A DNA stretch of 64,000 nucleotides from Chlorokybus atmophyticus. Its lineage: Eukaryota > Plantae > Mesostigma and Chlorokybus algae. Positions 36,540 to 53,620 of the stretch are shown here, piece by piece. Each line of letters begins with the position of its first letter. Position 1 is the first letter of the stretch. The notes beneath the pieces are model-generated. The model did no database searches, was not told the origin of the DNA, and saw only the letters and a program-made list of their open reading frames with translations. A program made the translations under genes and the position numbers. Location of the stretch: assembly GCA_009103225.1 (NCBI GenBank), contig RHPI01002491.1, positions 105,707-169,706 of the forward strand, in the 5' to 3' direction.

Positions 36540-37997
36540 TACAGGATTGACTTATTACTCTACTCCTTGTGTCGATGGTATATATCCACTTCTGAACAAA
36601 TAAACCACTCGGGTGGCACTGCTGTTGCAGCCCTAGATCAACCTTGCCAAGCAGGTTACTCCCAACTCACTTGTCCTGTGCATGGAGCAAAGTCATCTTA
36701 CTCAAGCGGTCAACAAAGACAACGATAGCAGTGTGCCCGCGTGTAGCCTTTGGTAGCTCCACTATCAAGTCCATATACACACTTTTTCCAGGTGTCATCC
36801 GGCACGAAGAGCGCTAGCAAAGGTCCTGCCATCCTTTGCTTTGAGGACTTGTCACAACGGTTCTTGTGACATGAATAACATATCTTCATAAAGGCTTCTA
36901 GTTGAGAAGATAAGAAAGGTCACCAACAAGTCCTTTGTGCCAACTTGATGGTCTTTCTTATCCCCTAGATGCCCTTTATCATGTGGGTTGTGCATCACCG
37001 CCATGCACTCCGCTCCACTCATGATAGGATGCACGTTGAGACCGAGTCCAAACGTTAACAAATAAGGGTGATTTACTCACCAGGTCTGCAACATTGATTC
37101 AACCGAGATGATACTCTCAATCAACGTCAAACCTTGATAGAAAGTTTACCCATCGTACTTGTCTTCTTGACAAATTTGGTTGCTTAAGGAGGTAGATCAA
37201 TGGGTTGTGGTCCGTTACAACCGTGAACTTCAACCCCTCTAAATAACAATGCCATGCCCTCAAGGCGTCTATAACTCTAAGCACTTCCTGCTCGGTGGTT
37301 ATGTAATTCCGCTCCGCGGGAATGAACTGGTGCGGTTTGGGATAAATTGTGACAGACCTCACTCATGGTAGCGTCTTTTGCTATTATAGCCTAATGGTCG
37401 GAGCCCGCTTATCACAATGGTAACGGAGCTTAACGTCTCAGGTTCAATTCCCGTAGGGGACTGAGGCAGATCCAAGGGCAAAAAACATTCGGGGCGGCTT
37501 GCCTTAGAGTGGGCGCAGGTTCGCAACCTGCGCCCCGAGCCAGTTTGATCTATGGCTGCGTGAGCAGTCGCGCCGCGATGGCAGGTTGCGCGGTGAGGAT
37601 GGCCGGATCCAAAAAGCCGCATGCGGACCGGTCATGGTACAGCCGTGACCATGGCGACGTGGGCTAGTAAGTGCTTCATTGGATAATGAGAAACCCGTGG
37701 GTTAAAATGGGGAGAAATGTCACGATTTGGGATAAATTGTGACAGACCTCACTTATGGTAGCGTCTTTTGCTATCATAGCCTAGTGGTCGGAGCCCGCTT
37801 GTTACAGAATCAAAAGCAATCGGGTGCCCTTTTCTAAAGTACCACACCGGTAGTCAACAAGCTAGCATCCGATACAACTTGAAAAAGCTTCGTGAAGTCC
37901 GACAACTTCAACACCGGTGCACTCACCAAAGCCTTTTTAATTGTTTTAAATGCTTGATTCGCTTCTTCCAACCACACCCATTTCACTTCCTTACTCA
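36540..37997 (-). pseudogene. Old Ty3/Gypsy pol relic (RT connection, RNase H, integrase) of a different family; cut by the TRIM and by the DNMT element
   Basis: The minus strand reads WVWLEEANQAFKTIKKALVSAPVL...SDAS...GHPIAFDS, then [TRIM], then FIPAERNYITTEQEVL...VTDHNPL...RRQVRW; later HDKGHLG and MDLIVELPKATRGHTAIVVFVDRLSKM. It has many stops and frameshifts. Confidence 0.88.
37328..37806 (+). mobile_element. TRIM (479 bp) with 89-bp LTRs, PBS, PPT and tRNA-type A/B boxes
   Basis: LTRs at 37328-37416 and 37718-37806 (TG...CA). PBS-like TGGTAACGGAGC at 37418-37429; PPT AAAATGGGGAGAAA at 37704-37717; A box TAGCCTAATGG at 37387-37397; B box GGTTCAATTCC at 37441-37451. Confidence 0.8.
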
Positions 37998-38821
37998 TGT
38001 CATGCACGAGCATGTAGTGTCATGTGCATGGTGCCCTCGGTGCTGGCGGCATGGATGGACCGTGGAATTTCGGCTCGCATAGCCATTTTACAGGGTTTAA
38101 GTGTTGGGTTTTCGTTGGGAACTCATGTTTGGGTCCTCATGGACGTAAGGGAGGTGTGTTCGAGGCGTATCTACAGTCAGATACCTAGCTGACGGCATAA
38201 TTGAGTCATTATGGTATCCCGCGCAGCTGTTTTGGAGTTGTGACTTTAAGAAGCCATAACTTATAGTTGGAGTGGCGGTTTGGCCGTGGGTTGGCGTCAA
38301 AAGATGCGTCTTGAAGTGTACTTGAAGAAGATAAGCTTGGATAAGCCTTTCCTAACCACCTACGGTTACTTATCAACGCCATCATGGCTGTTACTATGCT
38401 GGTGCAGAGTGACAGTTAGGGTAGTTGGAAAGTTGGTTGGGCTTGGGTTCAACGGTGGTATATAAGGCTTTGCTAGCTTGTTTCCTAGTTTGGTTGGATG
38501 CAAGTTGGCCTACTGGAGTGCAAGCAATACCACTGGGAAGAGGTTCTTGGCTGAGCGGATGTTTGTGCACATGCTTGCAAGTATTGTGTGTGCATGTGTT
38601 CGTTGCTGTGCGTTGCTGTGCATGAAGGGGCGTGTGTCACTGTTGCGACTTTGATGCACTGTATGGGCTGCCTTTGCATGTACATTGAGTGAGGATTGAG
38701 TTTGGACTGCTCTACACGAGGGAACGGTTGATTGCAAGTCAAGTTGTGGTCATCTTGCCTACCTTTAGCAAGGGGACCCGCATCTTTCACTTGCATCCAA
38801 CCCATCAGCTGAGTTTGCTCA

Positions 38822-39259
38822 AGGAAGAAGCAAGTTGCAGGTGAGTTCATGCCCACCAGATCTAGAGAGGACTGGCAGTCACGCCCATCCAAGATGCCCT
38901 CGAAGAGAGAAGCGAAAGGAAGGATCACTCCGGTGGAGGAGGGCCTTGCCGAGGAGGTGGAGTTGACAAGTGACGAGGAGTCGGACATCGAGGACGTGGG
39001 TGGAGAGATGCATGATTCAGCTTCAAGCATGGATAGCACAAGGAAGAAGCAAGTTATAGGCGAGTTCATGCCCACTAGATTTGGAGAGGATTGGCCGTCA
39101 CTTCCACCGAAGCCGCCCTTAAAGAGAGGAGCAAAAGGAAGGATCACTCCGGTGGAGGAGGGCCTTGCCGAAGAGGTGGAGTTGTCAAGTGACGAGGAGT
39201 CCGACATCGAGGACGTGGGTGGAGAGATGCATGATTCAGCTTCAAGCATGGATAGCACA
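38822..39259 (+). repeat. In-frame tandem duplication (219 bp, 73 codons) of the leader and gag start in the outer copy
   Basis: AGGAAGAAGCAAGTT...GATAGCACA at 38822 recurs at 39041. The peptide GRITPVEEGLAEEVEL.SDEESDIEDVGGEMHDSASSMDST occurs twice, versus once in the inner copy. Confidence 0.9.
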
Positions 39260-42200
39260 CCGAAATTCAGTGGGAGGCCTGGCACGGCGGACCTAAGCGA
39301 CTTCATCAACCGCTTCGACTCCAAGATGGTCCGATGGGCGTAGCGGGACAAATCAGGGTGGGACGAGCACAAAGCCTTCAAGATTTTGCCTCTACACCTC
39401 AAGGATGAAGCCCTTGGCACGTGGAGAGAGTTCAAGGAGCAGCTGGAGGTGAGGGAGAGGGCGTTGCGGCTCGGTGCACCGGCTGAGTTTGAAGCGGAGT
39501 GGAAGAAGGAGCAGCCCGTGACTGAGTTCAAGGCGCTCTTGAGAAAGACCTACCCACAATCAACACCCGCCAAGGTTCGTGAGCTGAGTTTCTTCAAGAG
39601 CAACGTCGGGGAGACGGCGAGGATGATGTATACGCGCATGCCCAAGCTCTTTACGGACACGGACTACAAGGTGATGACGGATCAGACCGCGGCGGTTGTG
39701 TACCTTCAACAACTAGAGGCGCACTTGAGGCTGAAGTTGGAGACCTTGTTGACCACTCAGTCCAAGTTCGGCACACACACGCTTGCGGATGTTTTCAAGG
39801 TGGCCAAGACGGCAGGAATTCAGCATGAGTACCTCGAGAACATTGACCGGCAGCGTCGGGGGTTGAAGATGCTTGAGATTTCGGAGGAGAAGAGCTCTTC
39901 CAAGCCCGCGACGACATCGGCGGCAAACAAGGCAGCTGGTGGGAAGCCAAAGGAGTTCAAGCACGCCAACAACGCGGTTGTGAAAGGTGTGTCGGGTGCC
40001 AAATGCTGGTCGTATGACGAGCAAGGCCATATTGCAAGGGATTGTGGGAAAGGCAAGAAGGTGGTGTGCTCTCGTTGCAAGAAGGGCGGGCATGTTGATG
40101 CCAAGTGTTGGAGTAAGCATCCGGAGCTGCGTCCACATCAAGGAGGGGCAGTCGGAGCTCATTCCAGTGTGAGAGGAGAGCCATTAATGATGGAGGTGAC
40201 GAAGGCATTGGCGGCAATGCAATCGGAGTATGCATCGTTGAAGAGCATGCTCGAGCGAGGGAAATGGCCCGAGAGAGGAGCGGAGGATGGTCCTAGCAGC
40301 TCTGGAGGTTACCTCGCGTATAGTGCGCTCTCCGGAGACATGAAGGTGGCAGCTGTTGCGATGACGAGAGCGTCGGCACGCCGAAACGCTGCAACAGCTC
40401 CCCTGACTAGGATGGTTGAGGAGGAGGCCGCGCCGGTCCGCGAAGAGGGTGTGGATCATGATAGGATGCGGGCACCAGCTGTACGTATGCCTATGTCATT
40501 CAAGTTGCTGCCAACAACCCCGTTGGAGCAAGAGAGTTCGCGCTCGGAGGGTGCGAAAGTGCAGCCGACTGCTATGGCAACGGCGCGACATGATGTCGGC
40601 GTCGGTGGTGGTGGTGAGCACAAGAGAGTGGAGGAGCTGCTACAAATGTGTGTAAAGCTTCTCGAGGGTGCCAAAATGCTTTCCCAACAGCCCGCAACTC
40701 AAGCCAATGAAGAAAATGTGGAGTTGACGGCGCCGTTGGAGAGCGTTGCGGCGAAGCTGGTCGGGCAGCCGCTTGTTCGTGAAGGACCTTGGAGTCAGCA
40801 AGGAGCGTGGTAGAGCTGTTGCAAAGCGCTCTAGACACCACAAGGACTGCCTCGACAAACTCTCATAAGCGTGTGAGCAAGTCTCATGAAATATGGAGGC
40901 GCGAACAGGCCGTATGGCTGCGCGCCCAGAGCTGGCGGCGTCGGAGGGGTCGGCGTCGGCGTCGAGTTCTCTCACTCAGCTTGGAGACAAGCTGGAGGAA
41001 GGTGTGGGGAGTGTAGGAGGGAAGTTGGCACAGCTTCCCGCCACTCGGCCGGCCTTGAGAGAGAAGATATCGGCAAATGTGGCGTTGGTGGACAACCGTG
41101 GTGGACACATCAGCCTAGACGGCTTCGTGCCCAATGTTGTCTTGGTGGATACAGGTGCACAACCTGTCATTTTGGGTGCTAGAGCTGTCAAAGGGATGGA
41201 ACTCAGCCCCAAGGAGTGGGAGCCATGCCCGGTCATGATTAATACCTCGGCGGGAACCGTAAAGGCCGTGTGCGGCATAACGGTGCAGCTGGTGGACATA
41301 TGCTTGACTGCGTTGGGAGGTGCTACCACGTCCTTCAAGGTTCGATGCCTCATCACGGATGCGAAGGCGTATGATGTGCTGCTTGGACAAGTCTTCTTGT
41401 TCCCCGTCGGCGGCGGCGTTGACAATTGGATCGAACAAGGGTTTGTTCGGCCGCGTTGGCGTGTGGGGGGAAGTGAGAAGGCTTATCTTCCATTGAGCAT
41501 CACGCAAGGGGGTCTTGAGAGGTCTCCAACCTCTGCATCTGCTGTGTAGGCGTGCTTGAGTCACCGTTCAGTCAAGGGATGGCTTGGTAACAGCACCGAC
41601 ATGTACTATGACCATGTGGAGGAGGGGGAGCCTCTGAGAGTGTCTCCACACACGTGGAGGAGGGGAAACCTCCGGAGCTGGTCTATATGGCTCAAACTCA
41701 ATCACAAGCGCTGAAGTTGGCTTCACAACACCGTGCTCAGCGGCAACAAGAGGCTCGAGACAAGGTTAGCCAAGCATGGATGAAGGATGTGATAGCATTG
41801 GAGCCGCCGTTGCTGCCTGAGGGTGTGAGAGCTGTTCATCCACCTATCAACTACAACACCTTCGAGTGGAAGGTCCCCGAGGAGGGTGCTGTGATGGTGG
41901 AGCTGTTCGGTGGCATTGCAAGTGGGCTTGCGGCCGCGTTGAACGCCGGCATCAAGGTGCAGCGCTACGTCTATGTGGACCCCTCGCCAACGGCACAACA
42001 AGGTGCACAACATCATGTGAGAATGTTGTTGAAGAGGTATCCAGATCTGCTACATGAGGATGCGGTGAAGGGCTTTCAAAGCACATGGCCGCAAGACATT
42101 TGCTTGGTAGGGCCACATCAACTTGCAACTATTGGCCATGTGGATTTGCTTGTAGCCGGGTGGGAATGCCAAGGGCATTCACGGGCTGGTCATGTCAAAG

Positions 42201-43575
42201 GATTGATGGATACGCGCTCGTCATTGTTTTGGGAGTTGGTGCGCGTCATCAACATGATTTAATAAGGACAAGAGCAGCCCATGGCGTACATCATTGAGAA
42301 TGTGCCAGCTGAAGACGACAACCGCAAGCACGTGCGAGAGGACTATCAGCTGTGAGACATGTGCTAGGTCATGAGCTGGTCATGGATGCCGCATGGCATG
42401 GTTCGCGCGCGCATCGGCAACGTGTGAAGTGGACCAACCTCGCGCCAGTTGAGTTGCTTCGCACGGTGCAGCAAGAGTACTCTAGACCGCAAGGCTTGAC
42501 GGTTAACGAGGTGCTGGAGCATGGGCGCACAGTACAATAGGTCAGCAAGGCTGATCGGCCTCAAGAGGTGGTGCCAGGTCCGGCACGACATGGCGGCGTT
42601 GCCGACGTTGGTGACATACCTAGGCTCGTATGCTTTCCGCAAGAGAGGGCCAGGGCTGGTGTGGGACTCACGAAACAGCAGGTTGGAAGAACCAACAGCT
42701 GGTGAGTGCGAGCGTGCGATGGGGTTCTTGTCCAGTGCGACAGCGGCGCCAGGACTGAGTGAACAACAGCGCCGAGTGCTGCTAGGGAGACAAACCATGG
42801 ACCAGAACAGTATGGCGTGGCTGATGGTTGTCTGCTTGGCGGCACAGGATTTGGTAGCAAGCATCATGCCGGTGCGACAGCAAGCGCGTCGGGAGCCTGC
42901 GCCTCTGTCGAAGGGGTGGGAGCAGGTTGCACATGATGAGGAGAGTAAGGGGGTGTTTTTTTTGCCTATGACAGCTGCAAGTGGCAAGAAAGCGGCTGTA
43001 GATGGTGCCTTGAAGCTGGACAAGGCTACCAATCAGACCATGGAGAGGTGAGTGGGCGAGCATGTGATACCACATGAGCGTGCATGGCTCGAGGCGTTGC
43101 TGGCGCGCAAGCGTGACTGCTTTGCCTACGTACCAAAAAGTTGGGGGTCTGCCACTTCTACACAATGGACATTGAGTTGACCTCTCTGGAGCCCATCTTT
43201 TGTCGGCAGTATCGGCTCGGATTAAGGTGGAGAAAGAGTTTATGGTAGAGAAGTGTGCTGACTCGTTAAAGGATCGACTCATTGAGGAGTCAACCTCAGA
43301 CTTCGCGGCGGCGACGGTGTTGCCGTTGAAGAAAGATGCACAAGGAACTGGACCTCAAGAAGTATGTGTGGTGACTATCGTCCATTAAATGAGAGGACCA
43401 AGGCTGATCGGTACCCTATGCCTATCCCTGAGGCTATCTTTGATGACATTGATAATGCAAAGGTGTTTTCCATCGTGGACTTGAGGTAGGGCTTCAACCA
43501 GATCGCCATAAAGCCATAGGACCGTGGCAAGACAGCATTTTGGGGAGTGAACCAACTCTACCAATGGAAGGTCAT

Positions 43576-44368
43576 TGTCATGCGCGAGCATGTAGTGTCA
43601 TGTGCATGATGCCCTCGGGGCTGGCGACATGGATGGACTTGGGATTTTGGCTCTCATAGCCATTTTACAGGGTTTATGTGTTGGGTTTTCATTGGGAACT
43701 CATGTTTGGGTCCTCATGGACGTGAGGGAGGTGTGTTCAAGGCGTATCTACAGTCAGATACGGAGCTGACAGCATATTTGGGTCACTATGGTATCTCGCA
43801 CAGCTGTTTCGGAGTTGTGACTTTGAGAAGCCGTAACTTACAGTTGGAGTGGCGGTTTGGCCGTGGGTTGGCGTCAAAAGATGCGTCTTGAAGTGTATTT
43901 GAAGAGGATAAGCTTGGATAAGCCTTTCCTAACTGTTTACCGTTACTTATCAACGCCACCATGACTGTTACTATGCTGGTGCAGATTGACAGTTAGGGTA
44001 GTTGGAGAGTTGGTTGGGCTTGAGCTCAACGGTGGTATATAAGGCTTTGCTAGCCTGTTTCCTAGTTTGGTTGGATGCAAGTTGGCCTACTGGAGTGCAA
44101 GCAACACCTTTGGGAAGAGGTTCTTGGCTGAGCGGATGCGTGTGCACATGCTTGCATGTATGGCGTGTGTGCACGTGTTCGTTGCTGTGCGTTGCTGTGC
44201 ATGAAGGGGTGTGTGTCACTGTTGCGACTTTGATGCACCGTATGGGCTGCCTTAGCATGTACTTTGAGTGAGGATTGAGTTGGGACTGCTTTACACAAGC
44301 GAACGGCTGATTGCAAGTCAAGTTGTGGTCTACTTGCTCACCTTTTGCAAGGGGACACGCATCTTTCA
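43576..44368 (+). repeat. Repeat A1 (793 bp; distal U3-R-U5 part of the LTR)
   Basis: Near-identical to 51706-52499 and homologous to 37998-38789. It contains TATATAA at 44036-44042 and ends ...CATCTTTCA. Confidence 0.95.
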
Positions 44369-44381
44369 CTTGCATCCAACC
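44036..44381 (+). promoter_or_regulatory. TATA box plus a putative self-priming pair (transcript 5' end with the PBS)
   Basis: TATATAA at 44036. GGTTGGATGCAAGT at 44069-44082 is the exact reverse complement of ACTTGCATCCAACC at 44368-44381, which abuts the end of repeat A1. There is no tRNA-type TGG PBS. Confidence 0.75.
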
Positions 44382-44427
44382 CATCAGCTGAGTTTGCTCG
44401 AGGTAGAAGCGAGTTGCAGGCGTGTTC

Positions 44428-47400
44428 ATGCCTTTAAGATCTGGTGAGGACTGGCACGAGAGACCCACGAAGGCAGCTTTGAAGAGAAGAGCGCCGAGAG
44501 GGACGATCACTCCGGTGGTGGAGGGCGTCGCTGAAGAGGTGGAGTTGTCGAGTGACGAGGAGTCCGACATCGAGGACGAGGGTGGAAAGATGGCTGATTC
44601 AGCTTCAACCATGGATAGCACACCGAGATTCAGTGGGAGGCCCGGCACGGCGGACCTACGCGACTTCATCGACCGCTTCGACTCCGAGATGGTCAAGTGG
44701 GAGTATCGGGACAAGTCGGGGTGGGACGAGCACAAAGCCTTCAAGATGTTGCCTCTATACCTCAAGGATGAAGCCCTTGGCACGTGGAGAGAGTTCAAGG
44801 AGCAGCTGGAGGTGAGGGAGAGGGCGTTGCGGCTCGGCGCACCGGCTGCGTTTGAAGCGGAGTGGAAGAAGGAGCAGCCCGTGACTGAGTTCAAGGCGCT
44901 CTTGAGAAAGACCTACCCACAATCAACACCCGCCAAGGTTCGTGAGCTGAGTTTCTTCAAGCGCAACGCCGGGGAGACGGCGAGGATGATGTATACGCGC
45001 ATGCTCAAGCTCTTGACGGACACGGACTACAAGGTGATGACGGATCAGACCGCGGCGGTTGTGTACCTTCAACAACTAGAGGCGGACTTGAGGCTGAAGG
45101 TGGAGACCATGTTGACCACTCAGTCCGAGTTTGGCACATACACGCTTGCGGATGTCTTCAAGGTGGCCGAGACGGCAGAAATTCAGCATGAGTACCTCAA
45201 GAACATTGACCGACAGCGTCGGGGGTTGAGTTGCTTGAGATTTCGGAGGAGAAGAGCTCTTCCAAGCCCGCGGCAACATCGGCGGCAAACTAGGCAGCTG
45301 GTGGGAAGCCAAAGGAGTTCAAGCACGCCAACAACGCGGTTGTGGAAGGTGTGTCGGGTGCCAAATGCTGGTCGTGTGGAGAGCAAGGCCATATTGCAAG
45401 GGATTGTGGGAAAGGCAAGAAGGTGGTGTGCTCTCATTGCAAGAAGGGTGGGCATGTTGATGCCAAGTGTTGGAGTAAGCATCCAGAGCTGCGTCCACAA
45501 CAAGGAGCGGCAGTCGGAGCTCACTCGAGTGTGAGAGCGGAGCCATCAATGTCGGAGGTGACAAAGGCATTGGCGGCAATGCAATCGGAGTATGCATCGT
45601 TGAAGAGCATGCTCGAGCGAGGGAAATGGCCCGAGAGAGGAGCGGAGGATACGCCAAGCAACTCCGGAGGTTACCTCGCGTATAGTGCGCTCTCCGGAGG
45701 CACTAAGGTGGCAGCGGTTGCGACGACGAGAGCGTCGGCACGCCGAAACGCTGCACCAGCTCCCCCGACTAGGATGGTTGAGGAGGAGGCCGCGCCCGTC
45801 CGCGAGGAGGGTGTGGATCATGATAGGATGCGGGCACCAGCTGCACGCATGCCTATGTCATTTAAGTTGCTGCCAACAACCCCGTTGGAGCAAGAGAGTT
45901 CGCGCTCGGAGGGTGCGAAAGTGCAGCCAACTGCTACGGCAACGGCGCGACATGATGTCGGCGTCGGTGGCGGTGGTGAGCACAAGAGAGTGGGGGAGCT
46001 GCTACAGATGTGTGTAAAACTTCTCGAGGGTGCCAAAATGCTTTCCCAACAGCCCGCAACTCAAGCCAATGAAGAAAACTTGGAGTTGACGGCGCCGTTG
46101 GAGAGCGTTGCGGCGGAGCTGGTCGGGCAGCCGCTTGTTTGCTTGAAGGACCTTGGAGTCAGCAAGGAACACGTGGTGGAGCTGTTGCAAAGTGCTCTAG
46201 ACACCACTAGGACTGCCTCGACAAAGTCTCATGACCATATGAGCAAGTCTCATGAAGATATGGTGGCGCAAGCAGGCCGTATGGTTGCGCGCGCGGAGCT
46301 GGCGGCGCCCGAGGGGTCCGCGTCGGCGTCGAGTTCTCTCACTCAGCTTGAAGACAAGCTGGAGGAAGGTGTGGGGAGTGTAGGAGGGATGTTGGCAATG
46401 CTTCCCGCCACTCGGCCGGCCTTGAGAGAGAAGATATCGCCGAATGTGGCGATGGTGGACAACCGTGGGGGGCACATCAGCCTAGACGGCTTCGTGCCAG
46501 ATGTTGTCTTGGTGGATACAGGTGCACAACCTGTCATTTTGGGTGCTAGAGCTGTCAAGGGGATGGGACTCAGCCCCAAGGAGTGGGAGCCATGCCCGGT
46601 CATGATCAATACCTCGGCGGGGACCGTAGAGGCCGTGTGCGGCATAACGGTGCAGCCGGTGGACATATGCTTGACTGCGGTGGGAGGTGCTACCACGTCC
46701 TTCAAGGTTCGATGCCTCATCACGGATGCAAAGGGGTACGATGTGCTGCTCGGACAAGACTTCTTGTTCCCCGTCGGCGGCGGCGTTGACAATTGGATCG
46801 AACAAGGGTTCTTTCGGCCGCGTTGGCGTGTGGGTGGAGGGGAGAAGGCCTATTTTCCGTTGAGCATCACACAAGGGGGTCTTGAGAGGTCTCCAACCTC
46901 TGCATCTGCTGTGTGGGCGTGCTTGAGTCGCCGTTCAGTCAAGGGATGGCTTGGTGACAGCACCGACATGTACTATGACCATGTGGAGGAGGGGGAGAGT
47001 GTCCTCGCACACATGGAGGAGGGGAGACCTCCGGAGCTGGTCTATATGGCGCAAACTCAGTCACAAGAGCTGGAGTTGGCTTCACAACATCGTGCTCAGC
47101 GGCAACAAGAGGCTCAAGACAAGGTTAGCCAAGCATGGATGAAGGATGTGATGGCATTGGAGCCGCCATTGCTGCCCGAGGGTGTGAGAGCTGTTCATCC
47201 GCCTATCAACTACAGCACCGTCGAGTGGAAGGTCCCCGAGGAGGGTGTTGTGATGGTGGAGCTGTTCGGTGGCATTGCAAGTGGGCTTGCGGCCGCGTTG
47301 AACGCCGGCATCAAGGTGCGGCGCTATATCTATGTGGACCCTTCGCCAACGGCGCAACAAGGTGCACAACATCATGTGAGGATGTTGTTGAAGAAGTATC

Positions 47401-50400
47401 CAGATCTGCTACATGAGGATGCGGTGAAGGGCTTTCAAAGCACATGGCCGCAAGACATTTGCTTGATAGGGCCACATCAACTTGCAGCTATCGGCCATGT
47501 GGATTTGCTTGTAGCCGGGTGGGAATGCCAAGGGCATTCACGGGCTGGTCATGGCAAAGGATTGATGGATGCGCGCTCGTCATTGTTTTGGGAGTTAGTG
47601 CGCATCATCAACAGGATTCAGCAAGGACAAGAGCAGCCCATGGCGTACATCGTCGAGAATGTACCAGCTGAAGATGACAAGCGCAAGCGCGTGCGAGAAG
47701 ACTATCAGCTGGTGAGACATGTGCTAGGCCATGAGCTGGTCATGGATGCAGCACGGCATGGTTCGCGCGCGCATCGGCTGCGTGTGAAGTGGACAAACCT
47801 CGCGCCGGTTGAGTTGCTTCGCACGGTGCAGCAAGAGTACTCTAGACCGCAAGGTTTGACAGTCAACCAGGTGCTGGAGCATGGGCGCACAGCACAACAG
47901 GTCAGCAAGGCTGATCAGTTGCCTCAAGAGGTGGTGAACCAGGTCGGGCACGACATGGCGGCGCTGCCGACATTGGTGACATACCCAGGCTCTTATGCAT
48001 TCCGCAAGGGAGGGCCAGGGCTGGTGTGGGACTCACAGAACAGCAGGTTGGAAGAGCCAACAGCTGGTGAGCGCGAGCGTGCGATGGGGTTCTTGTCCGG
48101 TGCGACAGCGGCGCCGGGACTAAGTGAACAACAGCGCCGTGTGCTGCTAGGACAAGCCATGGACCAGAACAGCATGGTGTGGCTGATGGTTGTCTGCTTG
48201 GCGGCACAAGAGTTGGTGGCAAGCATCATGCCGATGCGACAGCAAGCGCGTCGGGAGCCTGCGCCTCTGTCGAGGGGGTGGGAGCAGGTTGTACATGATG
48301 AGGAGAGTAAGGGGGTGTCTTTTTCGCCTGTGACAGCTACAAGTGGCAAGAAAGCGGCTGTAGATGGTGCCTTGAAGCAGGAAAAGGCCACCGACCAGAC
48401 CATGGAGTGGTGTATAGGCGAGCATGTGACACGACATGAGCGTGAGTGGCTCGAGGCGTTGCTGGCGCGCAAGCGTGACTGCTTCGCCTACTCTACCAAG
48501 GAGTTGGGAGTTTGCAACTTCTACACAATGGACATTGAGTTGACCTCTCCAGAGCCCATCTTTCGTCGGCAGTATCGGCTGAGCAAGGTGGAGAAGGAGT
48601 TTGTGGCAGAAAAGTGTGCTGACTTGTTGGAGGCCGGACTCATTGAGGAGTCAACCTCGGACTTCGCGGCGGCGACGGTGTTGCCGTTGAAGAAAGATGC
48701 ACAAGGAAACTGGACCTCGAGAAGGATGTGTGGTGACTATCGGCCTCTCAATGAGAAGACCAAGGCTGATCGGTACCCCATGCGTATCCCTGAGGCTATC
48801 TTTGATGACATCGGTGATGCAAAGGTGTTCTCCATTGTGGACTTGAGGCAGGGCTTCAACCAGATCGCCATCAAGCCCGAGGATCGTGGCAAGACAGCGT
48901 TTTGGGGAGTGGACCAGCTCTACCAATGGAAGGTCATGCCGTTCGGCTTGAAGAATGCGCCTGTGAAGTTTCAGCGTGTGATGGACCGTGTGCTTCGTGG
49001 TCTACCCTTCGCAAGGTGCTACATAGATGACATCTTGGTGTTTAGCCACACGATGGAGGAGCATCTCGTGCACTTGGAGCGCGTGTTCGAGCGCGTGCGC
49101 GAGAGCGGCATGAGGTGTCACCCGGAGAAGTGCTTGTTTGGAGCTGATCGCATCCCGTATCTCGGCCATGAGATAGTGCCGGATGGCGTCCGTGTGCAGC
49201 AAGCAAAGGTGGATGCCTTGGTGCAAGTGCCCGCACCGACGGACATTAGCCGGCTTCGAGCGTTTCTCGGCTTGGCGAACTACTATCGGAGGTTCGTGGA
49301 GGGGTATAGCAAGATTGCAAAGCCCTTAAATGAGTTGTTGAAGAAGGACAAGGCCTGGTGCTGGTCGGAGGAGTGCCAACGTGCCTTTGAGCTTCTCAAG
49401 GAGAAGCTATGCACCGCGCCGGTGTTGAGACGGGCGGACTACAACCGTCCCTTCATCCTACACACGGATTGGAGCCGTTTGGGCATTGGGGCCGTGTTGT
49501 GTCAAAAGGATGATGATGGGAAGGAGTATGTGGTCGCGTATGGCAGCCGAAGCAACAATAACGCTGAGGCAAACTACAGCTCCTATGAGGGGGAGTGTTT
49601 GGCAGTAGTTTGGGCCATAGTTCACTTCAGACCGTTCCTCTATGGCCGTCCCTTCACACTCATCACCGACCACCAGCCCTTGAAGTGGTTGATGACCAAT
49701 GACAAGCTCACGGGGAAGCATGCCAGGTGGGCGCTCATACTGCAAGAGTATGAGTTTGAGATTGAGCACCGAGCTGGTGTTGACAACATGGACGCGGATG
49801 GGCTGAGTAGGAACCCAAACCCTTCATCGTTGGATGAGAGTGAGGCGAGGCATGACTATGGCATGCCCGTGGCTGGGTTTTTGGCCTACCGTGTGGCTTC
49901 TTTGCTGGTGTTGGCGGGTTCGGTGGAAGCATGCGCATCCATGCGCGCAAACGCAGCTGGAGATAGCGACAACAATGGTGTAATGCCGCCTTTGGAGGCT
50001 GCACCAGCCCCAACGGTCAATGACATTGAAGGGGAGGAAGCCGAGGCTTCAAAGGACATTTGGAGGGATGAGCAAGTGCTTGCTCACCTCAAAACCGGGC
50101 TGTTCCAAGCTGGTTGCAGCACGGCGACGCGAGATCGCGTGTGGCAACGCGCGCAACGCTATCGATGGGAGGGAAACCACCTTGTGCGCTTGATGCCGGA
50201 TGGAGGTGTGAGGATTGTGCCTCAACCACATGAGAGGAAGCCGCTTGTGGAGCTGCTTCATGAGAGGATGGGCCACTTTGGTGTCAAGAGGACACTTGGG
50301 CTCGTGCAATCAGCATATTGGTGGGCTGGCATGAAGTCTACCGTGGCGGAAGTTGTTGCAAGCTGTGTGGAGTGCGACAGAGTGAAGGCAAGCTTCAATG

Positions 50401-51491
50401 CCAAGCACCCACAGCTGCACCCTCTACCTATTCAAGGACTTTTCTATCGGTGGAGCCTAGACCTGGCCGGAGATCTACCAGTCAGCAAGAGAGGCAACCG
50501 CTACGTGCTCGTGATGATAGAGCACTTCTCCAAGTGGGTCGAGGTCGTGGCGCTGCCATCGAAGGAGAGCAAGCTTGTGGCTGAGGCTTTCCTTGATCAA
50601 GTCCTTAGCAGATTCGGTGCTTGTGCTGAGGTTCTCACTGACCAAGGCACCGAGTTTCGTGGCCAGTTCGATGACTTGTTGGCGCAAGCCTTTATCGACC
50701 ATCGAAGGACTTCTCGTGACCATCCTCAAGCCGATGGGCTTGCTGAGCGAATGGTACAGGTGGTGAAGAAAGGGCTTCGCAAGTACTGTCTCAACCACAA
50801 CAAGAGAGACTGGGACTTGGCGTTGCCATGGTTGGCAATGGGCTATCGCATGACGCGGCAGGCTGCGTTGAGCTCATACAGCCCCTATTTTTTGTTGTAT
50901 GGGAGAGAGCCCATATTGCCAACATCAATCCGGAGACAGGTTGAGCAGGAGCTTGACTTGGAGGATCCCAATGTGTGGGAGAAGGAGATGGCAAAGCGTG
51001 CGGAGCTGTTCCGGTGTGTGATGCCGATTGCACTTGGCAACTTGCAAGTGGCACAACACCGCGACACGCTGCGCTATGCCAGGGTGAGGAGTGGCTTCTA
51101 CAAGCCAAGACTGCAGAAGTTTCAGCCCGGAGACTTTGTCTACCTGCAGAGAAAGACCAAGGACACGTTGGATACGAGTGCGAGCCGCACCATCCTTCGT
51201 GTGAAGAAGCTTCTCAACAACGGTGTGTTGTTGTTAGAGGGAGCTGATGCCAGGACCACTAAGGAGCACATGAAGAGCTGCGCTCCTTGCCATCTGCCAA
51301 ACGTGGATGACAGTGTGGATCCGGCTCTGGCAATACCAGATGTGGGCCACCGTTGTGAGCGGTGTGGCCGAGCGGAAGGCTGGGACACCATGCTGCTGTG
51401 CGACACCGCTTGGCACATGGAGTGCCTTCGTCCACCAGTTGAGGAGATCCCTGATGGGACATGGTATTGTCCAGCGTGTACGAGGACTTGA
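44428..51491 (+). CDS. Gag-Pol polyprotein: Gag (2 CCHC knuckles), aspartic protease, C5 DNA methyltransferase, RT, RNase H, integrase, PHD. This copy has a 1-bp deletion near 45230 and a TAG at 45291; pol is open from 45342 to 51491
   Basis: CWSCGEQGHIARDC and CSHCKKGGHVDAKC; VLVDTGA; ELFGGIASG/AGWECQG/IVENV/HRLRVKW/LLGQAMD; MPFGLKNAP...YIDDIL; ILHTDWS...YEGECLA...TDHQPL; HERMGHFG...CVEC, IEHFSKW, TDQGTEF, GLAERM; CERC...LLCD...WHMECL...WYCPAC. Confidence 0.95.
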
Positions 51492-51542
51492 GTAGCGTGT
51501 GAGTCAGCTGAAGGCGCACGAGGGCGTTGGCGCTCAGCTGCA

Positions 51543-51703
51543 GGGGGTGGTGACACGCATCTTTCATGCGTGTGTCAACTTCATGTGATGAGAGATGGTG
51601 CATGAGGCAGCATGACATGGTCTCATGGTGTATAATAGCATGCGTACATGCATGGCAAGGAGGTTTACGATGAGTTCGAGTCACGATGCGGGAAGGCACG
51701 ACA
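51543..51703 (+). repeat. Repeat B1 (161 bp; PPT-like GGGGGTGG plus proximal U3)
   Basis: Duplicated at 52500-52660. It contains the hairpin ACACGCAT-CTTTC-ATGCGTGT and ends GCACGACA. Confidence 0.95.
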
Positions 51704-51705
51704 GC

Positions 51706-52499
51706 TGTCATGCGCGAGCATGTAGTGTCATGTGCATGATGCCCTCGGGGCTGGCGACATGGATGGACCTTGGGATTTTGGCTCTCATAGCCATTTTACA
51801 GGGTTTATGTGTTGGGTTTTCATTGGGAACTCATGTTTGGGTCCTCATGGACGTGAGGGAGGTGTGTTCGAGGCGTATCTACAGTCAGATACGGAGCTGA
51901 CAGCATATTTGGGTCACTATGGTATCTCGCACAGCTGTTTCGGAGTTGTGACTTTGAGAAGCCATAACTTACAGTTGGAGTGGCGGTTTGGCCGTGGGTT
52001 GGCGTTAAAAGATGCGTCTTGAAGTGTACTTGAAGAGGATAAGCTTGGATAAGCCTTTCCTAACTGTTTACCGTTACTTATCAACGCCACCATGACTGTT
52101 ACTATGCTGGTGCAGATTGACAGTTAGGGTAGTTGGAGAGTTGGTTGGGCTTGAGCTCAACGGTGGTATATAAGGCTTTGCTAGCCTGTTTCCTAGTTTG
52201 GTTGGATGCAAGTTGGCCTACTGGAGTGCAAGCAACACCTTTGGGAAGAGGTTCTTGGCTGAGCGGATGCGTGTGCACATGCTTGCATGTATGGCGTGTG
52301 TGCACGTGTTCGTTGCTGTGCGTTGCTGTGCATGAAGGGGTGTGTGTCACTGTTGCGACTTTGATGCACCGTATGGGCTGCCTTAGCATGTACTTTGAGT
52401 GAGGATTGAGTTGGGACTGCTTTACACAAGCGAACGGCTGATTGCAAGTCAAGTTGTGGTCTACTTGCTCACCTTTTGCAAGGGGACACGCATCTTTCA
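51706..52499 (+). repeat. Repeat A2 (794 bp)
   Basis: About 99% identical to A1 by eye; separated from B1 by GC. Confidence 0.95.
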
Positions 52500-52660
52500 G
52501 GGGGTGGTAACACGCATCTTTCATGCGTGTGTCAACTTCATGTGATGAGAGATGGTGCATGAGGCAGCATGACATTGTCTCATGGTGTATAATAGCATGC
52601 GTACATGCATGGCAAGGAGGTTTACGATGAGTTCGAGTCACGATGCGGGAAGGCACGACA
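52500..52660 (+). repeat. Repeat B2 (161 bp), right terminus of the element
   Basis: Copy of B1 directly abutting A2 and followed by the TCAT TSD. Confidence 0.95.
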
Positions 52661-53134
52661 TCATGCCATTCGGCTTGAAAAATGCACATGTGAAGTTCCA
52701 GCATGTAATGGACTGTGTGCTTCGTGGTCTACCCTTCGCAAGGTGCTACATTGATGACATATTGGTGTTTAGCCACACGATGAAAGAGCATCTCGTGCAC
52801 TTGGAGCGCGTGTTCGAGCGCGTGCGCGAGAGCGGCATGAGGTGTCACGCGGAGAAGTGCTTGTTCGGAGCTGATCGCATCCCTTATCTCGGCTATGAGA
52901 TAGTGCCGGATGGCGTCCGTGTGCAGCAAGCAAAGGTGGAGCCTTGGTGCAAGTGCCTGCACCGACAGACATTAGCCAACTACGGGCGTTTCTCGGCTTG
53001 GCGAACTACTATCAAAGGTTCGTGGGGTATAGCAAGATTGCAAAGCCCTTAAATGAGTTGTTAAAGAAGGACAAGGCCTGGTGCTGGTTGGAGGAGTGCC
53101 AACGAGCCTTTGAGCTTCTCAAGGAAGAAGCTAT

Positions 53135-53620
53135 CACATGGAAAAGTCAGCGCAAACCACAGGTGGTCACAACCGTTGTGACCACTAGATCACGGGTCAA
53201 GACCAGACTCACGACCATGTGCCTACAGTATGGTGGCGACGTTCGACAACCATTAATGGTGCAATGTTACCACCTCGTTGCTGGTCCGCGGACCACACTG
53301 ATATGGCTGTAACCGGTATTCATGGCCACTGCGGCATGACAGTCACACCATTAATGGTTATGACGATAGACACCAGTATGACATGACATTCATACCAGTC
53401 GTGGTCATGACGGTTAGCACCATGGAGGCCTAACCAATACGCCATGTGTGGTGGAAACCGCGATCACCAGTATGACATGACATTCAAACCAGTTGTGGTC
53501 ATGGCGGTTGCCGCCATGGCGGCATAACCGTGACGCCATGTATGGTGGAAACAGTCATCACCACTACGGCATGACCGCCATCACTAGTGTTGGTCACGAC
53601 ATGCATGACCACCATGGTCC
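53135..53620. repeat. Probable left end of a CACTA-type element with palindromes and ~94-bp tandem repeats
   Basis: The sequence switches abruptly to CACATGG... at 53135. It holds the inverted repeat GTGGTCACAAC-C-GTTGTGACCAC, CCATTAATGG twice, and an ACCAGTATGACATGACATTCA unit at about 53372 and 53466 with a third partial copy. Confidence 0.5.

Follow-up and report, generated by a model that had tools for sequence, protein, structure and literature searches.

Textbook retrotransposition of elements with long terminal repeats (LTRs) has integrase acting on the two termini of a linear complementary DNA (cDNA), and the end-joined circles that also arise are regarded as by-products and a dead end. 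How, then, can a retrotransposon with a standard DDE integrase and a standard target-site duplication (TSD) be inserted as a circularly permuted copy? This question is raised by an element located at positions 43576-52660 of a 64,000 nucleotide (nt) stretch of Chlorokybus atmophyticus DNA, hereafter called the window. Coordinates given below are window positions unless a locus is named, and features of the window are on the forward strand, except for a palindrome to which no strand is assigned. Judged from its sequence, the element is a young and intact Ty3/Gypsy-DNMT3 retrotransposon of a green-algal clade that carries a PHD finger on its integrase. The comparisons presented here give good support to the view that its integrase-defined ends are the two halves of an internal palindrome and not the cDNA termini, that is, that integration is shifted in register relative to reverse transcription.

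Layout of the element and its target-site duplication

The coordinates obtained with a repeat finder and BLAST show that the element is built as A1-internal-B1-GC-A2-B2 with intact gag and pol, in agreement with the arrangement and repeat lengths proposed in an initial annotation of this DNA. A1 (43576-44368, 793 nt) starts with the integrase left end (TGTCATGC) and holds the promoter. B1 (51543-51703), which ends in ...CACGACA, the integrase right-end sequence, is separated by a GC spacer (51704-51705) from A2 (51706-52499, 794 nt), and A2 is followed directly by B2 (52500-52660), which supplies the integrase right end. The element therefore has the termini TGTCATGC... and ...GCACGACA. Each copy of B is 161 nt long (163 nt with the shared CA); A1 and A2 are 99.4% identical, and B1 and B2 98.8%. 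Independent Logan contigs from two runs cross the junctions from the internal region through the polypurine tract (PPT), B1 and GC into A2 without any difference, which makes mis-assembly of that joint unlikely; these contigs are short, of approximately single-copy depth, and cover the A2-B2 joint thinly.

The element is flanked by the sequence TCAT on its left (43572-43575) and right (52661-52664) sides. It interrupts an older copy of its own family, the 5′ part of which occupies positions 37998-43575 (∼92% identical to the young element) and which continues, within the region encoding reverse transcriptase (RT), at 52661-53134, where it is truncated; the 3′ repeats of the older copy are not in the window. 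The older copy reads ...GGAAGGTCAT / element / TCATGCCATTCGG... around the insertion, and the homologous stretch of the young element (48908-48967), which reads ...GGAAGGTCATGCCGTTCGG... and contains a single TCAT at 48934-48937, is uninterrupted and provides the equivalent of an empty site. This comparison demonstrates that TCAT was duplicated exactly once and over exactly 4 bases, so that the 4-bp TSD of the initial annotation now has an internal control. Its observation that the older copy shares the starting TGTCATGC with the young element and has no B in front was also confirmed, and the flank preceding that start is unrelated.

The insertion site corresponds to the conserved YQWKVMPFGL motif of the RT-coding region of the element's own family. 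Other repeats were detected in and around the older copy. A 219-bp tandem duplication (38817-39254, 90% identical), absent from the young copy, is present in its leader and the start of gag; two 93-nt direct repeats 390 bp apart (37324-37416 and 37714-37806) are located immediately upstream of it; and a 94-nt tandem pair (53371-53558) lies just downstream of its truncation point.

Coding capacity and relation to described elements

The element contains a gag-like open reading frame (ORF) of 370 codons (44422-45534), which is 85% identical to gag of the older copy and gave no match in a Pfam search, and a pol ORF of 2049 codons (45342-51491). Pfam domains in the pol product occur in the order CCHC, protease (PR), C5 DNA methyltransferase, RVT_1, RT_RNaseH, H2C2, rve and a C-terminal PHD finger. 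The methyltransferase domain (PF00145, pol residues 705-782, E 3e-10), matched at the level of the C5 methyltransferase family, is placed in frame between protease and RT (window 47250-48210), and the database proteins nearest to pol also bear PF00145. The integrase (IN) aligns best to Ty3 IN (7q5b, E 8e-22) and next to PFV IN, with its D, D and E residues spaced as in DD35E. A tyrosine recombinase was not found, as neither pol, gag nor the antisense ORFs gave a Phage_integrase match; the antisense ORFs matched no family at all.

By its PR-RT-RNase H-IN order with a DDE integrase, and by its termini, a short TG...CA inverted repeat flanked by a TSD in the 4-6 bp range (TGTCATGC...GCACGACA, TCAT), the element is a member of Ty3/Gypsy, but it lacks the two identical flanking LTRs, with integrated ends equal to the cDNA ends, that are typical of this group. 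The split direct repeats A1-int-B1-A2-B2 are those of PAT-like, Ngaro and DIRS elements (including the non-autonomous TOC1), for which a circular or end-joined intermediate has likewise been proposed; these elements, however, encode a tyrosine recombinase instead of a DDE integrase and produce no TSD.

A combination of both sets of features has been described. KnitGypsy-Dnmt3 of Klebsormidium nitens has DIRS-like repeats (A-coding-B-A-B) together with Gypsy domains (de Mendoza et al. 2018, PMC5890265, Fig. 4c legend), and the window element shares with it both the in-frame C5 methyltransferase in a Gypsy pol (of the Dnmt3 type in KnitGypsy-Dnmt3) and, by comparison with the text of that legend, the DIRS-like repeat arrangement. 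The K. nitens proteins are only ∼48% identical to the window pol over RT-IN. Thus, the statement in the initial annotation that no described Ty3/Gypsy family behaves in this way does not hold, since the layout has been in print since 2018. That paper (PMC5890265) gives no TSD, primer binding site (PBS), PPT, palindrome or mechanism, and our literature search found no later paper that mentions KnitGypsy-Dnmt3 and none that treats the ends, the TSD or the mechanism of this family. The present comparisons add new evidence on how a split-repeat Gypsy layout may work.

Candidate signals for reverse transcription define a B-GC-A repeat

A TATA box (TATATAA, 44036-44042) is present in A1, and 26 nt downstream of it lies the sequence GGTTGGATGCAAGT (44069-44082), the presumed 5′ end of the RNA. 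This sequence is the exact reverse complement of 14 nt straddling the end of A1 (44368-44381, ACTTGCATCCAACC), which constitutes a candidate PBS of the Tf1 self-priming type and is identical in the older copy (38789 onwards). The element thus presumably primes reverse transcription from the predicted 5′ end of its own RNA, and the equivalent of R-U5 in A1 runs from ∼44069 to the end of A. Complementarity of this kind is found in all five families compared. Its length is 14 nt in the window element and 11, 24 and 15 nt in loci L006, L002 and L001, respectively, and it reaches up to 16 nt in a metagenome (JGI) family. The self-primer is located 25-30 nt past the TATA box in each of them and its sequence is unrelated between families. 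Because the pairing is kept while the sequences differ, PBS and self-primer covary, which fixes the end of U5 at the end of A. The predicted pairing resembles that of Tf1/sushi elements, in which the PBS is complementary to the first nucleotides of the RNA made from the element itself, close behind a TATA box; Tf1, however, has ordinary paired LTRs and its integrase works at the cDNA ends.

On the other side of the repeat, a plus-strand primer site (GGGGGTGG, 51543-51550) marks the start of B1, and a G-run is found immediately before B in each family (the window family, L001, L002, L006 and the JGI metagenome family). A PBS at the end of A and a G-run at the start of B together indicate that reverse transcription treats B-GC-A as the repeat unit, of which B1, as the 5′ part, and A2 form one full copy. 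The earlier proposal that B plus A constitutes the working LTR is therefore supported by families whose sequences are unrelated.

The 14-mer ACACGCATCTTTCA (positions 44355, 51553, 52486 and 52510) forms the end of A and also the start of B right after the G-run. Within B it provides the 5′ arm and the loop of a perfect 8-bp hairpin, ACACGCAT-CTTTC-ATGCGTGT, for which no clear counterpart was found in the other families.

Integrated ends are halves of a conserved internal palindrome

The B1/A2 junction, GCACGACAGCTGTCATGC, is an 18-nt palindrome in which 8 of the 9 pairs match. It can be written as GCACGACA-GC-TGTCATGC (51696-51713), and its two halves are the integrated termini of the element, as the initial annotation had recognized. 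The core of this putative attachment (att) site, CGACA-GC-TGTC(A/G), is conserved in about nine families, being present in the window, in L001, L002, L006 and L089, in the metagenome (JGI) family, and in L007 (Pleodorina) and L088 (Closterium). When the junction was aligned for 18 independent insertions it displayed substitutions only and not a single indel. The termini defined by reverse transcription (the start of B and the end of A) have, by contrast with this core, nothing in common between families. We propose that integrase cuts after CA on each strand, so that the GC at 51704-51705 would be left as a 5′ overhang next to a recessed CA-3′OH; this would account for the absence of GC at both integrated ends. 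A CpG is part of the half-site CGACA in every family, whether or not a methyltransferase is encoded.

The joint between A and B varies from insertion to insertion

The joint between the end of A and the start of B, named J, occupies positions 52500-52507 of the window element. In the same alignment of 18 insertions J was precise in eight cases, and the remaining ones had gained or lost a few nucleotides (+1, -1, -2, -3 or +11). In a further insertion, L033, ∼150 nt of B are lost at J, and the end of B and a CCAC duplication are kept. The variants are scattered over the RT-IN tree and sister copies differ. J is a hot spot of indels whose distribution is independent of the tree. This is what would be expected if the cDNA termini were joined anew at each insertion, as in retroviral 2-LTR junctions, and it argues against J having been copied from a parent element.

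In the relatives, J is a direct join of the U5 end to the U3 start without PPT. The J of the window element carries the 8-nt G-run GGGGGTGG, and the initial annotation had taken this as the mark of a 2-LTR junction that had kept its plus-strand primer. The G-run is indeed there, but its retention is peculiar to the window family. Even in that family J is not constant, since a contig of another strain joins the end of A to B from its 42nd base via 14 other letters.

Insertion forms and target-site duplications of relatives

When metagenome contigs were scanned with the RT region, 80 loci (53-62% identity) were recovered, and these were probed with A and B sequences of the respective families. 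About 19 independent metagenome insertions end in B-A-B and hence have the A-int-B-A-B form, which was also observed in L006, L007, L088 and L089; about 15 metagenome relatives have one B only at their end, and the contig continues well past it (A-int-B form). B was not found upstream of the coding region in any of the 25 elements with 5′ sequence, so that the conventional B-A-int-B-A form, which would have spoken against a permuted insert, was absent from all of them. TSDs of 4 bp were identified in 13 elements, the window element and 12 relatives (TCAT, AGCT, TTTA, TTTA, ATGT, CAAT, GTAG, CCAC, TGCA, CCAA, ATGG, ATTG and GGTG/AGTG), and flank both forms. Two of the forms predicted from the window copy, each with a 4-bp TSD, thus exist among its relatives. 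The element of L006, with the AGCT duplication, is inserted in a satellite array and its repeats are 100% identical. Klebsormidium nitens loci L003 and L004, which run into contig ends within the elements, and Haematococcus locus L005, a tangle of inverted duplications, were left out of the comparison of ends.

Locus L001 (1-18357; ENA ERZ25067493, contig name ending _c) consists of 2.2 tandem units of 8262 bp that are 99.5-99.8% identical, each made up of the internal region and one B-GC-A repeat with PBS and PPT. The contig, which the assembler labels as circular, may derive from an array of tandem copies in the genome or from a 1-LTR circle. In the window itself, the 3′ end of a second pol of the IN-PHD type, 50% identical to that of the element, is present at 1-1373 (to about 1500) and is followed by the G-run GGGGGGGTGG. 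A repeated B is absent from the following 8 kb, and the 5′ end of this pol lies outside the window; it may belong either to a short A-int-B form or to a truncated copy.

A model for insertion of the permuted copy

The inserted copy, A-int-B-GC-A-J-B, contains a whole repeat followed by a further B, which implies that the two cDNA termini have been joined; an end-joined intermediate is therefore likely. We consider it rather probable that integrase cuts the internal palindrome of such end-joined cDNA, of which a 2-LTR circle would be the simplest form, and so inserts a permuted copy. According to this model, transcription would start in A about 26 nt past the TATA box, and the first 13-14 nt of the RNA would fold back onto the PBS abutting the end of A, in the manner of Tf1. 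With plus-strand synthesis starting at the G-run before B, the product of reverse transcription would be (B-GC-A)-internal-(B-GC-A), and its termini would be joined into J before or at insertion. The DDE integrase would ignore the cDNA termini and recognize TGTCATG... and ...CACGACA facing each other across the GC spacer, opening the circle at the palindrome nearest the PBS. One double cut after CA on both strands would produce two 3′-processed ends with 5′-GC overhangs, and strand transfer with a 4-bp stagger would follow.

Several points weigh against this model. No circular or end-joined cDNA was observed in the available data, the short contigs of two runs. A 2-LTR circle would contain two identical palindromes, and if these were cut at random a mirror form, A-J-B-GC-A-int-B, should be equally frequent; it was seen in 0 of the 25 elements with 5′ sequence. 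As the mirror form would be just as dead as A-int-B it should be equally visible, and the model thus needs a bias that it does not explain. One locus, L002, does carry an additional A-J-B unit 5′ of the element, but its structure suggests nesting or rearrangement. Moreover, the A-int-B copies need not have arisen directly from 1-LTR circles or linear cDNA; they may instead be secondary, formed by deletion between B1 and B2. Slippage after insertion could also have produced some of the small indels that J shows in old, AT-rich copies. Hence, the proposal of the initial annotation that a DDE integrase cuts a 2-LTR circle fares well as regards the register shift and a J that resembles end-joined cDNA, but not as regards the mirror forms that random cutting predicts, and the circle itself is a matter of inference. 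In the six families measured B is always shorter than A, which means that the palindrome used is the one nearer the joint. The lack of mirror forms may reflect either a directional choice of the cut site or a fast collapse of mirror copies to A-int-B.

In L002 (8593-18801) A-J-B units are present on both sides, and the 5′ side reads ...GACAGC-TGTC-TGTCAGG..., which looks like the result of one element integrating at the att palindrome of a second. As its 3′ side lacks 3 nt, L002 was counted neither way.

Alternative explanations

A variant in which integration precedes end-joining would dispense with a free circle: integrase would cut the PBS-proximal palindrome in linear cDNA and insert the start of A together with the end of the freed 161-bp B fragment, and host end-joining would seal J in the chromosome. 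Product, TSD and variable J would be the same as those expected from a circle, and the presence of a short B fragment in the synaptic complex, B being shorter than A in every family, might explain why the palindrome near the left terminus is used exclusively. We nevertheless regard this variant as unlikely, because it has no known precedent and would risk a chromosome break at each insertion; besides, the mirror form would also result if the right-hand palindrome were cut, which in principle leaves the bias unexplained. The single orientation would follow naturally from templated regeneration, the scheme suggested for DIRS, PAT and Ngaro, whose layout is identical. Here the RNA would run into B2, template jumps on the B1-A2 junction would rebuild A1...B2, J and B2 would be copied from the parent, and integrase would only trim the ends; mirror forms would not arise, and the PPT-retaining J of the window family could be inherited. 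The position of the signals speaks against it, however. With the PBS abutting A1 and the PPT abutting B1, nothing downstream of the end of A2 is reverse transcribed in any standard scheme, and no route of reverse transcription was found by which J and B2 could be taken over from the parent with the signals in these positions. Also, J differs between sister insertions and between strains in the window's own family, and its precise form recurs in all clades. Taken together, these data make templated regeneration quite improbable.

Finally, the A2-B2 tail might be an accident of the window copy: an element that normally has conventional LTRs could have acquired it by unequal crossover, by a later duplication or through mis-assembly. 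The low contig depth over B2 and the A2-B2 joint in the two runs would allow for this, and tandem B-A units may grow or shrink through unequal exchange. Yet the TSD flanks the start of A1 and the end of B2 exactly, the relatives listed above independently have the same layout, and no conventional copy was found; such an accident is hardly credible.

Implications for DDE integrases and split-repeat elements

Cutting of end-joined DNA by integrase has precedents in retroviruses. Foamy virus and HIV-1 integrases cut the palindromic LTR-LTR junctions of 2-LTR circles (PMC1180852, PMC1905944): an integrase tetramer cuts the palindrome formed by two facing viral ends and generates 3′-processed ends, much as proposed here. 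The viral palindrome, however, is the joint of the cDNA termini, so that cutting restores the normal linear genome, whereas the palindrome of the window element lies inside U3; the joint of the termini, J, is retained on integration, and this makes the inserted copy permuted. A possible case for comparison with the PHD-finger Gypsy clade is the active Chlamydomonas element Gypsy-7a_cRei, which has a PHD finger and is drawn with "LTR subparts", its left LTR being without the final 8 bp of its right counterpart (PMC9940879, Fig. 6A legend).

More broadly, we hold it to be an evenly balanced proposition that a green-algal Ty3/Gypsy clade, ranging from streptophyte algae to Volvocales, has shifted its integrase sites from the cDNA termini to a palindrome in U3, that it requires end-joined cDNA (a 2-LTR circle or an equivalent), that the choice of the cut site is directional, and that the clade bridges DDE-integrase LTR elements and the circle-integrating DIRS/PAT elements. 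Finder software that expects paired LTRs will mis-annotate the whole clade. With integrase sites inside U3 the clade would depend on the joining of cDNA ends; if so, end-joined cDNA would be a necessary intermediate, integrase would function as a double-strand nuclease specific for an internal palindrome, and these algae would offer a natural test system for the disputed use of LTR-LTR junctions by integrases. It would also account for the fact that retroelements with a DDE integrase and retroelements with a tyrosine recombinase share a split-repeat layout.

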